Shown: positions 3,112 through 51,345 of the stretch, in pieces
Position numbering within the stretch: position 1 is the first letter of the stretch
Layout: every line of letters begins with the position of its first letter
DNA from: Octopus sinensis
Taxonomy: Eukaryota
Reading direction: 5' to 3'
Length of the DNA: 64,000 nucleotides
Assembly (NCBI RefSeq): GCF_006345805.1
Contig: NC_042997.1
Coordinates: forward strand, 65,968,001 to 66,032,000
The notes under the pieces: model-generated
Told to the model about the DNA's origin: nothing
Seen by the model: the letters and a program-made list of their open reading frames with translations, nothing else
The model's database searches: none
Translations under genes and position numbers: made by a program

Positions 3112-3188
3112 CTGTAAGAGGCTGTAAACCACTGTCTGTTATTAAACTACATGAGTTGAGACTCAGGTGTACTAAGTTGGTATGCATC
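3112..3188 (-). CDS. Exon F (last in window) of an LRR-containing gene: (R)MHTNLVHLSLNSCSLITDSGLQPLT
   Basis: Acceptor ...tttacatctccacag and donor gtaagc. 77 nt, phase 2 to phase 1, joins exon E in frame (AG|G = Arg). LxxLxLxxCxxITDxGL is a cysteine-containing (AMN1/FBXL-type) LRR. Confidence 0.92.
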
Positions 3189-3319
3189 CTGTGGAGATGT
3201 AAACACACAAAATGAAAACAGAAAAATTAACTGAATTTTCAAAATTCAGAATCAAAACAAATAACATATAATAATAATAATAATAATAATAATAATAATA
3301 ATAATAATAATAATAATAA

Positions 3320-4170
3320 TAATGGTTTCAAATTTTTCCACAAGGGCAGCAGTTTTGAGGGAGGCGATGAGTCGATTACATCAACCCTGTATTCAACTGG
3401 TAGTTAATTTATCGATCCCGAAAGGATGACAGGCAAAGTCAACCTCAGTGGAATCTGAACTCAGAATGGAGTGACGGGCAAAATACCACTAAGTATTTCA
3501 TCCAGCGAGCCAATGATTCTGTCAGCTCGCCACCAAATAGTGATAATAATAATAACCCTTTCTACGATAGGCACAAGGCACAATTTTTTTTTTGGGGGGG
3601 TGGATAGTCAATTAAATCAACACAAGTGTTTCATTGGTACTTATTTTACTGACCCTGAAAGGATGAAAGGCAAAGTTGACCTCAGTGGAATTTGAACTCA
3701 GAACATAGCGACAGGCAAAATACCTATTTCTTTATTACCCACAAGGGGCTAAACACAGAGGGGACAAACAAGGACAGACATATGTATTAAGTCAATTACA
3801 TCGACCCCTGTGCGTAGCTGGTACTTAATTTATCGACCCCGAAAGGATGAAAGGCAAAGTCAACTTCGGCGGAATTTGAACTCAGAACGTAGGGACAGGC
3901 AAAATACCGCTAAGCATTTTGTCCAGCATGCTAATGAATCTGCCAGCTCTAGTGATAATAATAATAACGATTTCAAATTTTGACACAAGGCCAGTAACTT
4001 TGAGGAGGAGGTAAGTCAATTGCTTCAACCCCAGTACTCAACTGGTACTTATTTTACTGCCCATGAAAGGATGAAAGGCAAAGTCAACCTGAGTAGAATT
4101 TTAATACAGAACATGAAAACAAATGAAATGCCACTAAGCATTTTGCCCAGTATGCTAACAATTCTGCCAG
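3320..4170 (-). mobile_element. Head-to-tail array of about 4 tRNA-derived SINEs with a Nin/Deu-like central domain and (ATT)n tails
   Basis: Repeated gaaaggatgaaaggcaaagtcaacctc..gaatttgaactcagaa core (reverse of a B-box-like gagttcaaattcc plus tttcatcctttcggggtcgataaattaagtacc). Copies are partly separated by short TAA tracts. Confidence 0.8.
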
Positions 4171-4429
4171 CTTTTCGAAGATGATGATGATGATTCCACA
4201 AGGGCAACAAATGAAGAAATTATAAAAATGCACATAAAGTGGTGGTGGGATACATAGAAAATCGAATGAGTAACAGAAAATATTAAAACAGCATGAAATA
4301 TAAATATACATCATCATCATCATCATCATTTAACGTCCGTTTTCCATGCTAGCATGGGTTGGGCTATAATGACAATTATGCAGTTCTATTTATAAGGAAG
4401 ACATTCATCTGATAATAATAATAACAACA

Positions 4430-46697: not shown

Positions 46698-46975
46698 ATA
46701 ATAATAATGATAATAATGATAATAATAATAATAATAACAACAACAACAATAATAATAATAATAATAATAATCATAATCATAATAATGATAATAATAATAA
46801 TAACAACAACAATAAAAATAATAACAATAATAATAATAATAATAATAATAATAATAATAATAATAATAATAATAATAATGATAATATGACCACAAAATAA
46901 TAATAATAAATAATAATAATGATGACAACAACAATGATGATGTTAATAATAATAATAATAATAATAGTAATTATA
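46698..46975. repeat. Long (AAT)n microsatellite
   Basis: Seen directly. Confidence 0.95.
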
Positions 46976-49900
46976 ATTTGTTGCTTGATAGTCAGGCAAT
47001 CTTAAAGAGTTAAAGATAAATGTATAAAGTTCTTAGGTTAAGCAAGTTTGGCTAGCCTGGCCTATCGCCACCACAGACTACAGAAAGATGGGAAAATAAA
47101 AGAAACAAGAAGAATGAAGGGAAAAAAATGATGATGATGATAAAAATAATAATAATAATAATAATAATAATAATGAAGCAAATGTGAATTCTTTTGGCAA
47201 ATTATATTTCATAGTTCCTCTATTACATTGTTTACCAATACTGTACAAAGATAATCTTCCTTGGCACGCTTTCAAGAAACTGACTAGCCTTTTATAGAAT
47301 TCCAGCTAACGACATTGAGTTAGTACTGAAGTGAGTGTGCAGACCACAGACCGCAGAACAAGATGAATGTCAGGCTGGTATTTTCATGCAGTTTAGACTA
47401 TTGATACAAGCCAAGAATAGTAGCAGAGAATGAAATAACTATTGAACTGACAATGTAAACACATTAACTGCTTTTTGTTTTTACACTTTCATATATATAT
47501 ATATATATATATATATAGATATATATATATATATATATATATTATATATATATATATGTATGTATGTATGTATGTATGTATGTATGTATTCCCATGATTT
47601 GGAGATGAGCTCAACTATTAAAGAGTATTTCAAATAAACACATATCTGGATAATATTAAGACAATTAAACAATGATATTATAACATGATATTATTTAAGC
47701 GATTTATAAACATACCATCACCCTGCCAATCAAAATAAAACAAAGAAATCAAAAAGCATATTTTGTTAGTATAGCTTAAAAAAATAAACAACGTTTAAAT
47801 GTTTGCAATCTGAAGACAGACTTTTGAGTAATGGCTCAATTGCAAACAAAGACTACTTTTTATCTGATTTCTTTACATAATCCAAAATGATTTATGTTTG
47901 CTAGATCATCAGTTAACCTACAGAGATATTATTACTAATTGAAACCAGAAAACAAGATTCAATCACTGCACTGACAAGTATAGTTATCATACATAACACA
48001 TTTAACCTTACATTGTGCTGCCACTAACACCAAACCTATACATCACTGCTGCTGCACACCACATTACTGGAAACTATAAAAACTACTACATCTGTACTAC
48101 TACTTGTACTATTACAAATTATCACATCTACCCAAAGATGATCCTACCACCTAGTCAACATCATCATCGTCATTGTTGTTCTCATCATCAACATCATTAT
48201 ATAATGCCCATTTTTCATGCTGACATGGATTCGGTTTTTGTTTGTTCCTTCTCGTGCTATGCCTGGCTCATAAGGGCCGGTTTCCCAGTTTCCTTGGCAT
48301 ATAGGTTCCCCACCTGGACAAGATGCTGGCCTGTCACAGGTGAGCTGCAAGATGCAGGAGGAAAGAGTGAGAGAAATTCGTGGTGAAAGAGTCAGCAGAA
48401 GTTCGCCATTACCTTCTGCCAGAGCTTAGGTGTTTTGCTCATAAACATACACATCGCCCAGTCTGAGATTCGAACCCATGATCCCTCAACCACGAGTCCA
48501 CCGCTCTAACCACTAGGCCATGTGACTCCACTGGATTGGGTGGTTTGACAGGATCGAGTGAGCCACATGGTGACATGGAGCTCAAATGTCAACTTTGGCA
48601 AGGTTTCTAGGCTGGATACCCTTCCTAATGCCAACCAATTTACATTGTGTACAATGTGCTTTATTTTCTGTATCAACAGCACTTGTGAGGTCATCAGGTA
48701 ACTCACAAAATCTACACAACACTGCCACTACAAACCACACAACTGGAAGCTACAAAAATTACTACAACATCTCTACTGTTACCCATACTATTATAAATTA
48801 TTAAACCTACATAAAACTGATATGGCCACCTATACTAATGAAATCTACATGTACAAAACAAAACCTGCCAAGCCTACACAATACCTCTACAACCACCCAT
48901 ACTGCAAAAATTATCATAGCTTAACAAAACTCCCACTATTGTTTATACTACCAAATCTAGGTAACACTTCAACTACCTTGCATACTATCAAACCTAAGCA
49001 ACGTGTCTGCTACCACCTAGACTACCAAAAACTACAGTCTCCACCTGAAGTATCACTGTACATCTGAGATTGGTGTTTACCCTCATCTCTTGCATACACA
49101 GATACAAATAGCAGTTCTACAACATGCACACATACAAACATACACATATGTATGTTGGTTGAGCTAGACAATTTGTAGGCAGAGTTATAGAAGTGCTGAT
49201 CGCTTAAAGTGGAGGGAAGTTGTGAAAGAGGGAGACCCAAGGATGAAGTTTTGAAGGCTGATCTCAAAACGCTGAACCTTACGAAGGTGATGACAGAGGA
49301 TCAAGATATGTGGGGCATTGCTGTACTTGAGAAGACTTGTCCACCGCAACAGAATTGAGATCCTAAAACCAAAGTGCTATGTAAAACGCACTGGTGCTGA
49401 TGCCACTTAAAAAGCACCCAGTACACTTTGTGAAGTCATTGACATTAGAAAGGGCATCTAGACATAGAAACCAGGCCAAAAAAGACTATGAAACATGATG
49501 CACCCAAGGACTTATCAGTTCCTGTCAAGCCATCCAACCCATGTCAGCATGGAAAACAGATGTTAAACGATGATGATGATGATGATGATACTTTTGTGAA
49601 CTCCATATGGATTGAGGCCAGTGTTCTGAGTATAGTGATGCCATTAGTTACCAGCATTTGTCTACAATACAGCATGTGATCCAGTCCTTGTTGTAAGATG
49701 GTGGGTTGTGTAGTATACTACAATTACCCTGAGAGCTATACCAGCAGAGCACAAGCTCCTGATAGGGTCTCTATGCTTGACAGGTCAAAGGATGGATGCC
49801 AGACGAATATATGAACTACCTCTTCCCCAAAGGGAAAATGGGTTTGTAAGGGATAAAATCCTTACTTATAAAAAAAAGTAAAGCTATAGATGTATTAATG

Positions 49901-51135
49901 ATAATTCAAAACCAGTAAGACCTGGGAGAAGGCTTTCCCACAAGGAAATATGGCATTATGCAGCAAAATCTTTAGGGAAGCTGCAAGGTAAGGCAGGGCC
50001 CCAACTGGAGAGAAGCAGATAAGATGAACTGCAGTCAAGAACACTGGAGAAAGGATATCAATGTCCTATGCCCCATAGGGAGCAAATGGCTTAAGTAAAT
50101 ACTTATCTGCACTGTCTTGTCTGTTATCATCATCATCATTTAAAATCCATTTTTCATGCTGGCATGGATTGGATAGTTTGACAGGATCTGACCAACCAGA
50201 GAGCTGTCCAGGCTCAAATTGTCTGTTTTGGCATTGTTTCTATGGCTGGATGCCCTTCATAATGCCAACCAGTTTACATAGTGTGTTGGGGGCTTTTACA
50301 AAGCACCAGCACAAGTGCATTTTATGTGTGGCATGGGAAATTATAGAGAAAGATATGGTCATTAGTATGAGTTTTAGCAGGACTTGGATGGGACCAATGT
50401 TGTATGGTGCAAATGTAGCAAAAGGCAGAGTGATTGTGAATCACATCCATCATCATCGTTTAACGTCCGCTTTCCATACTAGCATGGGTTGGACGATCTG
50501 ACTGAGAACTGGTGGACCAGATGGCTGCACCAGGTTCCAATCTGATCTGGCAGAGTTTCTACAGCTGGATGCCCTTCCTAATGCCAACCACTCCAAGAGT
50601 GTAGTAGTTGCTTTTACATGCCATTGGCATGAGGGCCAGTCAGGCGGTTCTGGCAACGGCCATGCTCAAGTGGTGTTTTTTATGTGCCACCTGCACAGGA
50701 GCCAGGCCAGTGGCACTGGCAACGACCTCGCTCGAATGTTTTTCATGTGCCACTGGCACAAGTGCCAGTAAGGCGACGCTAGTAACGATCACATTGAAAT
50801 CTATTATTTGGACAGTTGAGATTTTTCATTCTATTTCACATGTTTACATCAGAACTTGGATGTTTACATCAGAAGAAAGAAAATCATAAAGTAAAACACA
50901 CATATTGCACTTAACCACAAGCTAACAGTAACAATACATTACAAGAATACCAGACATGAAAGAAAAAACATCCTCATATGAATGAAACCAGAGAATGTAA
51001 TTCAGAGAACTAATGTAATATAATACAAATTTTGATGTAAACATGAAGGTTGTAAACATCATGACTCAATCTAGCAGTGTGCAGTGTATAGATGAGGTGA
51101 ATAGACAGAATCATTAAGAGACCATCAAAACTTAC

Positions 51136-51345
51136 TTTGGACTTCTTGGCCATCCTGTTCTTCCCGATGAGATTCTTCGTTGTCAGCTTCCTCGCCAAGA
51201 CGCCGGCCCTGACCCCAACTGTGAAAACCTGACCGAGACGGAATTGTATCATCGTCATCGTCATCGTCATCATCATCACTCAAGCCAAGGAATCTCGGTA
51301 CTTGTGTTTTCTGGAATGCTACTTGGTAGTTAAATCCCTGTGAAA
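51136..51345 (-). CDS. Exon A (most 5' found): SQGFNYQVAFQKTQVPRFLGLS(D)10TIPSRSGFHSWGQGRRLGEEADNEESHREEQDGQEVQ
   Basis: Acceptor tttcttcttctgtcttttgtccag and donor gtaagt. 210 nt, phase 1-1. Contains SHP-like FHSWGQGRRLG. The upstream exon was not identified, so the entry phase is assumed. Confidence 0.85.

Follow-up and report, generated by a model that had tools for sequence, protein, structure and literature searches.

Does a gene of Octopus sinensis that brings p97/VCP-binding motifs and leucine-rich repeats (LRRs) together in one chain encode a ubiquitin-ligase subunit, or a p97 cofactor with a recognition domain of its own? The question is raised by a stretch of 64,000 nucleotides (assembly GCF_006345805.1, contig NC_042997.1, positions 65,968,001 to 66,032,000 of the forward strand), hereafter the window. 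An earlier sequence-only reading of this window had picked out two SHP-like p97-binding boxes, a motif resembling the elongin BC-box and an LRR, and had proposed from them a ligase substrate receptor carrying its own p97-recruitment sites. The matter is of general concern, as the AAA+ unfoldase p97/VCP works via several dozen cofactors and the choice of specific clients is a central open question. We find that the window holds six internal exons from the middle of a single minus-strand gene, LOC115211563, whose product is probably a substrate-recruiting p97/VCP cofactor, with the p47/Shp1 toolkit fused to an LRR client-binding domain.

Reverse-complement translation of the window placed all the motif elements and exons of this gene on the minus strand, with each motif in an open segment running from a polypyrimidine-AG acceptor to a GT donor. 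Six segments were matched exactly in a tblastn search with the 978-residue isoform X1 of the O. sinensis "uncharacterized protein LOC115211563" (XP_029635987.1; isoform X2 is XP_036357550.1). The spliced six-exon product is 293 amino acids long and 100% identical to residues 304-596 of XP_029635987.1; the AG/GT borders are canonical at all six exons and all the junctions are in phase. By tblastn, the window has no coding sequence for residues 1-302 and 598-978. An exhaustive HMMER search with the unspliced open reading frame of exon 4 (18668-18871, minus strand) recovered a 938-residue protein at 98% identity, together with weaker partial matches; the cluster of that protein comprises both O. 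sinensis isoforms, the O. bimaculoides orthologue LOC106872789 and split models from O. vulgaris and older O. bimaculoides annotations. The window departs from the O. bimaculoides sequence at two small points, which assigns it to O. sinensis or O. vulgaris. The sequence-only reading thus had the motif coordinates and the six in-phase exons right, and its outer limits, 3112 and 51345, are annotated exon ends (tblastn and the exact spliced match). Its LxxLxLxxCxxITD repeat stands as one unit, the window holding no further one. The features are as follows, with exon limits from tblastn and the exact spliced match and motifs from reverse-complement translation:

51136..51345, minus strand: coding exon 1, amino acids 303-373, with acceptor ...TGTCCAG and donor GTAAGT
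51194..51226, minus strand: SHP box 1, FHSWGQGRRLG, of the Derlin-1 type
33541..33624, minus strand: coding exon 2, 84 nt, amino acids 373-401, acidic linker NLEPEIHDDEELYELQDDGLLHPVEAFP
23525..23638, minus strand: coding exon 3, amino acids 401-438, holding SHP box 2
23595..23618, minus strand: SHP box 2, FSGVGMRL, of the UFD1/p47 type
18678..19008, minus strand: coding exon 4, amino acids 438-549
18824..18853, minus strand: BC-box-like first cap helix, SLAQLCLQYI
12616..12681, minus strand: coding exon 5, 66 nt, amino acids 549-571, CQLQKLCFDSYAYVTNELLYEIR, the transition from the cap to the first repeat
3112..3188, minus strand: coding exon 6, amino acids 571-597, the gene running on past the low end of the window
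3134..3175, minus strand: first cysteine-containing LRR unit, LxxLxLxxCxxITD, LVHLSLNSCSLITD / LVHLSLNSCSLITDSGL

From the window, therefore, come the SHP-bearing linker, the helices of the cap and the first of the repeats; introns of 4-18 kb separate the exons. The linker behind the UBX domain begins in exon 1, which also encodes a run of ten aspartates, SHP box 1 and an acidic tail. Exon 4 codes for a short helix that is conserved (AAANTRHEH), for a tract rich in His and Gln and for the three cap helices in front of the LRR solenoid. Both small exons, of 84 and 66 nt, have lengths that are multiples of three, so that skipping either keeps the reading frame, and a four-exon join lacking both stays open; the 66-nt exon is probably constitutive, since its residues are highly conserved (C, Y, Y, T, N, L and L are invariant in the orthologue alignment). 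The LRR unit gives a match to Pfam LRR_6 below threshold and is similar to the LRRs of FBXL2. Comparison of exons taken singly with the PDB sequences yielded nothing beyond low-complexity noise. As a separate observation, the His/Gln-rich tract (QQRHHHHNQQQQQHQHHHHRHHHHHHH, 18872-18960, minus strand), directly before the cap helix, has a counterpart in O. bimaculoides that differs at one residue and a rearranged one in Argonauta, and the deuterostome orthologues lack it; judged from these sequences, it is a fast-evolving, cephalopod-specific insertion.

Over its full length the protein has the domain order UBA-like domain, coiled coil, UBX domain, a disordered linker of ~190 residues with two SHP boxes, a three-helix cap and ~15 LRRs. 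In isoform X1, Pfam profiles detect the UBA-like domain at residues 9-53 (PF22562, E=2e-5, below the Pfam cut-off), which is also seen in several orthologues, the UBX domain at residues 219-293 (PF00789, 58.6 bits against a cut-off of 21, E=7e-16) and LRR families across residues 574-930. The UBX profile scores 50-63 bits in the sea urchin, turtle and shark orthologues. Its loop reads QPFPRRDF in the octopus, and across 20 orthologues the F and P are invariant and the R/K nearly so; Phe-Pro-Arg is the consensus tripeptide by which UBX domains contact p97 (PMC10641518). With this profile match and this FPR loop the protein has, at the sequence level, the defining features of a UBX-domain p97 cofactor. 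The sequence-only reading had pointed beyond the window for possible UBA or UBX exons, and both a UBA-like and a Pfam-significant UBX domain indeed stand just upstream in the database protein.

An AlphaFold2 model of isoform X2, built with 20 orthologues (X2 numbering plus 40 gives that of X1), agrees with this layout. It has a long helix at 86-144 and a UBX beta-grasp fold at 179-254 with a predicted local distance difference test score (pLDDT) of 85-92. The linker at 258-447, which contains the SHP boxes, has pLDDT <50 and is predicted to be disordered, which fits the expectation for short linear motifs. Cap helices follow at 452-465, 479-491 and 497-505, the first of them being the BC-box-like motif, and ~15 regular strand-helix repeats extend up to residue 885 with pLDDT 85-96. 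Only one unit of this array lies in the window; the ~14 further repeats are encoded past its low end, and the later ones are ordinary LxxLxLxxTxV/ITDxG units of ~24 residues each. Isoform X2 begins with a different short N-terminus (MLWLLS...) and has no UBA-like domain, so a form unable to bind ubiquitin may exist.

The SHP boxes were compared with the box of UFD1 (225-FRAFSGSGNRL-235), in which F225, F228, N233 and L235 are critical; both glycines are strictly conserved among the known SHP proteins (PMC5042407). Both octopus boxes keep the aromatic residue, both glycines and the terminal leucine (W-G-Q-G-R-R-L and F-S-G-V-G-M-R-L). The linker is mostly unalignable across the orthologues save for a few islands, among which are the SHP boxes, and the HxWGxGxx[LV] form of box 1 is kept in almost every lineage that bears the linker (Argonauta, sea urchin, shark, turtles, tuatara and teleosts), i.e., across ~600 million years. 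One cichlid model is without box 1, apparently skipping that stretch. Box 2 is canonical in the molluscs and the sea urchin and degenerate in the vertebrates. The boxes read:

Box 1: octopus FHSWGQGRRLG; Argonauta FHSWGQGQRLG; sea urchin VHRWGQGHAVG
Box 1, continued: shark SHFWGRGQKLV; turtle QHRWGQGQRLT; tuatara HHHWGQGQRLV; teleosts SH[FSY]WGRGQ[KR]L
Box 2: octopus and Argonauta VFSGVGMRLL; Mya AFGGTGQRLV; sea urchin HVWGEGRRLD; vertebrates WP(x)(x)GNRL

Chance rates were taken from the six-frame translation of the window: the pattern [FW]x?GxGxx[LV] occurs there 0.07 times per 1000 amino acids, giving an expectation of 0.02 in 293 amino acids, and with so low a background two matches are improbable by chance. 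The conservation of these motifs across phyla is, like the gene structure and the domain content, a matter of direct observation. The p97-recruitment half of the sequence-only reading accordingly gains strong support at the level of sequence from the UBX domain, its FPR loop and the conserved SHP box 1. We also observed a third SHP-like box, WG[RK]GE[AMI]L, between the UBX domain and box 1 in the shark, the turtles and the tuatara; the same position is degenerate in the teleosts, where it reads W-E-E-A.

Comparison with known systems brings out both the affinity and the distinctness of this protein. With p47/NSFL1C, p37 and yeast Shp1 it shares the UBA domain, the pair of SHP boxes and a UBX domain whose loop reads FPR. 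Shp1/p47 use precisely this set, and in the p97-p37 structure the UBX domain and an SHP box lie on adjacent N-domains (PMC10641518). As the combination is exactly the Shp1/p47 toolkit, a p97 cofactor is the best supported identity. The arrangement differs: p47, p37 and Shp1 have the order UBA-SHP-SEP-SHP-UBX, whereas the octopus protein has UBA-coil-UBX-SHP-SHP-LRR, is devoid of a SEP domain and possesses an LRR solenoid of ~400 residues that none of them has. Its N-terminal half resembles UBXN1/SAKS1 and FAF1, which likewise have a UBA domain, a long helix and a UBX domain; the coil and UBX align with FAF1 (PDB 11ta_M, E=3.5e-7), and the UBX domain also with those of UBXN4 and FAF1. UBXN1/SAKS1 and FAF1, however, stop at the UBX domain, where the octopus protein adds SHP boxes and LRRs.

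The individual boxes have their closest counterparts in unrelated hosts. Box 2 (VFSGVGMRL) resembles AFSGSGNRL of UFD1 in its G-x-G kink and terminal leucine, and box 1 (HSWGQGRRLG) resembles the Derlin-1 box in the form in which the sequence-only reading quoted it; neither a Derlin domain nor the UT3/UT6 domains are present in the octopus protein. Among LRR proteins, FBXL2 and FBXL5 have the LxxLxLxxCxxITDxGL unit in common with the first octopus repeats, and FBXL2 (6o60_C) is the best PDB match (E=2e-12). The FBXL proteins have an F-box, whereas none was found in the octopus family (four orthologues, E<=1). Yeast Rad7 (PDB 5zb2), the SOCS-box LRR subunit of the Rad7-Rad16-Elc1-Cul3 ligase, aligns with the octopus cap and first LRR over ~100 residues and has LRRs of a similar cysteine-containing type, but is without UBA, UBX or SHP elements, and its similarity to the octopus cap is marginal (E=0.006). 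UBXN7/UBXD7 is linked to cullin-RING ligases through a UIM; neither a UIM nor a UAS domain was detected by Pfam in the octopus protein. In the unloading of CMG, UBXN7 is the UBA-UBX cofactor that links CRL2-LRR1 to p97 (PMC9633789), so that there the UBX and LRR components are separate proteins, whereas in the octopus they are in one chain. The octopus protein is neither an F-box protein nor a Derlin, and it stands apart from every described UBX member in its module order, in having no SEP, UAS or UIM and in ending in an LRR solenoid whose cap is Rad7-like.

By analogy with p47/Shp1, p37 and UFD1, the protein would most likely bind p97 and ubiquitin and use its LRR domain for recognition. The UBX domain would dock via the FPR loop into the Nn-Nc cleft of one p97 N-domain, and the two SHP boxes (three in some lineages) would occupy the SHP site, distinct from that cleft, of the same N-domain or of its neighbours, resulting in multivalent attachment; the UBA domain would hold ubiquitin chains and the LRR solenoid would provide specificity for a client or partner. 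Several points weigh against this account. The UBA match stays under the Pfam gathering score. The UBA and UBX exons lie outside the window, so that the key support comes from the database protein. The spacing from the aromatic residue to the glycine in box 1 is that of Derlin-1, not that of UFD1/p47. Vertebrate box 2 retains the aromatic residue, the second glycine and N-R-L, but the first glycine is replaced (WPEQGNRL), and since that glycine is strictly conserved in known boxes, vertebrate box 2 may be weakened or lost. A Foldseek search of the full model against the PDB returned only generic LRR neighbours (internalins, ribonuclease inhibitor, Roco, FBXL2 and SHOC2), which did not discriminate between receptor families.

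Two alternatives would undercut the cofactor reading itself. It is most improbable that the model is a mis-join of SHP exons and LRR exons from different genes, e.g., the last exon of a Derlin or a small UBX gene. Such an error would account for the older O. bimaculoides and O. vulgaris annotations, in which the locus is divided between a 'UBX domain-containing protein 4' and an 'F-box/LRR-repeat' protein, and it would find room in the long introns (4-18 kb) and in the open frame of exon 1, which reaches a stop three codons past the donor. Yet the junctions are all canonical and in phase, the linker islands and the cap are co-conserved, and the same collinear chain of UBX, linker, cap and LRRs is present in the independent annotations of Argonauta, sea urchin, teleosts, turtle and shark, an agreement that makes a mis-joined model unlikely. 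In the 12.6 kb upstream, moreover, a search found no Derlin transmembrane exons, and an approximate human Derlin-1 sequence compared with the window by tblastn matched the SHP box only and no six-transmembrane core. We had considered exon 1 as a Derlin terminal exon on account of its early stop and the strings 'GFNY' and 'TQVPRFL'; this candidate was ruled out, there being no Derlin core and the exon being internal to a UBX-LRR protein. Less remote, and still improbable in our estimate, is that p97 is bound through the UBX domain only, and that the WGxGxxL islands are kept for another partner, as a degron or as a modification site. Short glycine-rich motifs are prone to over-interpretation, vertebrate box 2 is without the 'strictly conserved' glycine, and single SHP peptides are weak binders (Kd ~220 uM for UFD1; PMC5042407). 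This reading has to contend with two or three copies of the motif per protein that fit the known critical positions (the aromatic residue, G-x-G and L), with their conservation across phyla and with their constant place in a disordered stretch right behind the UBX domain; UBX plus SHP is, besides, an established bipartite mode of binding (PMC5042407, PMC10641518).

The ligase reading would extend, and not replace, that of a p97 cofactor: in it the cap helix SLAQLCLQYI would be a working BC box, the LRR domain the substrate receptor of an Elongin C-cullin-RING ligase, and the UBX/SHP part the recruiter of p97. We regard it as doubtful. The broader BC-box consensus, (S,T,P)LXXX(C,S,A)XXXphi (PMC4878042), is fitted completely by the octopus (SLAQLCLQYI), Argonauta (TLAQLCLQYI) and Mya (SLAQMCLKNV) sequences. 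Its leucine is invariant in an alignment of 11 cap sequences, and [ST]-L-x3-[C/A] is kept in almost all the orthologues, a catfish having K at position 1. Position 6 is Cys in the invertebrates and Ala in all the vertebrates sampled, both of which the broader consensus allows; position 10 is T, A or S in the deuterostomes and hence not hydrophobic. Of the conservation that the sequence-only reading looked for, box 1 and the BC-like leucine were kept, whereas box 2 degenerates and the BC-like cysteine gives way to alanine in the vertebrates. The motif is predicted to be helical and precedes the LRRs in the chain, an arrangement also found in LRR-1, ZYG11 and PRAME. LRR proteins that are not known to bind Elongin C, AMN1 among them, have similar cap helices. 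The BC-box pattern also has 33 matches in the six-frame translation of the window (0.26 per 1000 amino acids; 0.08 expected in 293 amino acids), and, being so common by chance, a match to it is by itself weak evidence.

More specific is the likeness to Rad7. The profile of the cap region matched yeast Rad7 (PDB 5zb2_A) marginally with hmmsearch (E=0.0062, profile positions 2-105) and with 67% probability and E=5e-5 with hhalign; the match covers the whole cap, with the octopus motif aligned with SLQSLCITKI of Rad7, but part of the score stems from the first LRR and the generic cap. Mutation of the Rad7 SOCS-box residues L168 and C172, which lie in the aligned box, disables the Rad7-Rad16-Elc1-Cul3 ligase (PMC4551923). 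In the lineages inspected by eye, the 40 residues after the BC-like helix contain no strict match to a Cul2 box (phiPxxphixxxphi) or a Cul5 box (LPxP); a proline 15 residues after the leucine is conserved and an 'LxPELAExLL' helix is present, neither of which fits the Cul2/Cul5 consensus. The SOCS_box, VHL and F-box Pfam families gave no match in four diverse orthologues at E<=1, and the Foldseek neighbours of the full model were, as stated above, merely generic LRR proteins. What persists of the ligase-receptor half of the sequence-only reading is thus the conserved [ST]-L-x3-[C/A] and a marginal Rad7 match; the Cul2/Cul5, SOCS_box and F-box signatures of such a receptor were not found. On these sequences, binding of Elongin C by the cap helix is possible and on balance unlikely. 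Somewhat less likely still is the fuller proposal: that a relative of Rad7, the SOCS-box LRR receptor of yeast, has in metazoans been fused to UBA-UBX-SHP, and that the resulting single chain nucleates an Elongin C-cullin ligase on a client and passes this client directly to p97. If this were true, the Rad7-like fusion would couple ligase and segregase within one molecule, and fish, reptiles and many invertebrates would possess such a coupler; no relative from a mammal was among the matches returned. The simpler reading is that of an adaptor for p97 whose LRR domain binds clients and which need not be part of a ligase.

The putative p97 adaptor belongs to a family that ranges from molluscs to reptiles. 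Queries with the complete protein, and with a profile reaching from the UBX domain to the first LRR, recovered collinear UBX+LRR proteins from Argonauta hians (82% identity), the sea urchin Lytechinus variegatus, many teleosts, the catshark Scyliorhinus torazame, two turtles and the tuatara, along with a fragment of an orthologue from the clam Mya arenaria; the shark model (681 amino acids) ends after the first repeats. No protein of a mammal, bird, amphibian, insect/fly or nematode was among the matches returned by a search that scored only the 8000 candidates sharing most words, so that absence from mammals and the other groups is not proven. The sequence-only reading had recognised no named gene, and this stands: RefSeq has an 'uncharacterized protein', and the zebrafish orthologue bears a clone name, si:ch73-173p19.1, with 'ch73-173p19.1' named in no paper of the literature searched. 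A search of the literature on UBX or UBA-UBX combined with LRRs did not find such a protein either. The orthologues are variously labelled 'UBX domain-containing protein 4', 'UBX domain-containing protein 1', 'F-box/LRR-repeat 13', 'Dynein regulatory complex subunit 6' and, evidently by mis-transfer, 'canalicular multispecific organic anion transporter 2-like'. These database names are misleading and none is backed by domain tests; in particular, names of the 'F-box/LRR-repeat 13' type are misnomers, as four orthologues have no F-box.

The gene is thus annotated but uncharacterised, and its UBX-SHP-LRR combination is new among the described members. The catalogue of human p97 adapters in a 2023 review appears to be without any LRR-domain cofactor (PMC10641518). 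The present family, shared by protostomes and deuterostomes, would provide a UBX cofactor that has a large solenoid devoted to protein recognition and up to three SHP boxes, and its presence in zebrafish makes the gene open to genetic testing. Were the cap helix to bind Elongin C, the protein would be the first known to join a cullin-type receptor to p97 within one chain; should none of these proposals hold, the UBXD family still gains a clearly delimited member that has no name of its own.

The window as a whole is AT-rich (35% GC) and strongly depleted in CpG (observed/expected 0.28), with abundant microsatellites and interspersed repeats; Rfam and tRNA (ARAGORN) scans of it were empty. A Pfam scan of the long intronic open reading frames yielded nothing beyond one sub-threshold reverse-transcriptase fragment, which lies at 16635-17330 (plus strand) in the intron between exons 4 and 5 (RVT_1, E=4e-4, below cut-off). 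The same intron holds, at 13981-14928 (minus strand), a decayed mobile-element reading frame of 209 amino acids with frame-shifted continuations and no Pfam match; by reading only, these frames appear to end in a mariner/Tc1-like '...NSSEYNPLDYYVW' motif.

A dispersed repeat of ~250 bp is present at 27000-27260 and at about 10 further sites (e.g., 50455-50705, 15754-15936, 46002-46159 and 49388-49571), its copies being 72-78% identical and lying on both strands, in the introns and the upstream region. A second element is represented at 25170-25500 and 2576-2790, which are alike at 96%; neither repeat was recognised as tRNA-like by ARAGORN or Rfam. At 26060-27260 there is a CpG-rich block of ~1.2 kb, G-rich on the minus strand and with long (TA)n/(TATG)n microsatellites on both sides; it comprises an internal duplication (26060-26253 against 26392-26585, 98%) and a copy of the dispersed repeat. 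We had entertained an internal promoter in this block at 26-27 kb and dropped it, as the block consists of repeats flanked by (TA)n. Finally, 55947-56949 is a tandem duplication of a ~495-bp unit in two and a fraction copies at 99.7-100% identity, with a CpG observed/expected ratio of 1.2-1.4 against the 0.28 of the genome level; this duplication is recent or unmethylated.

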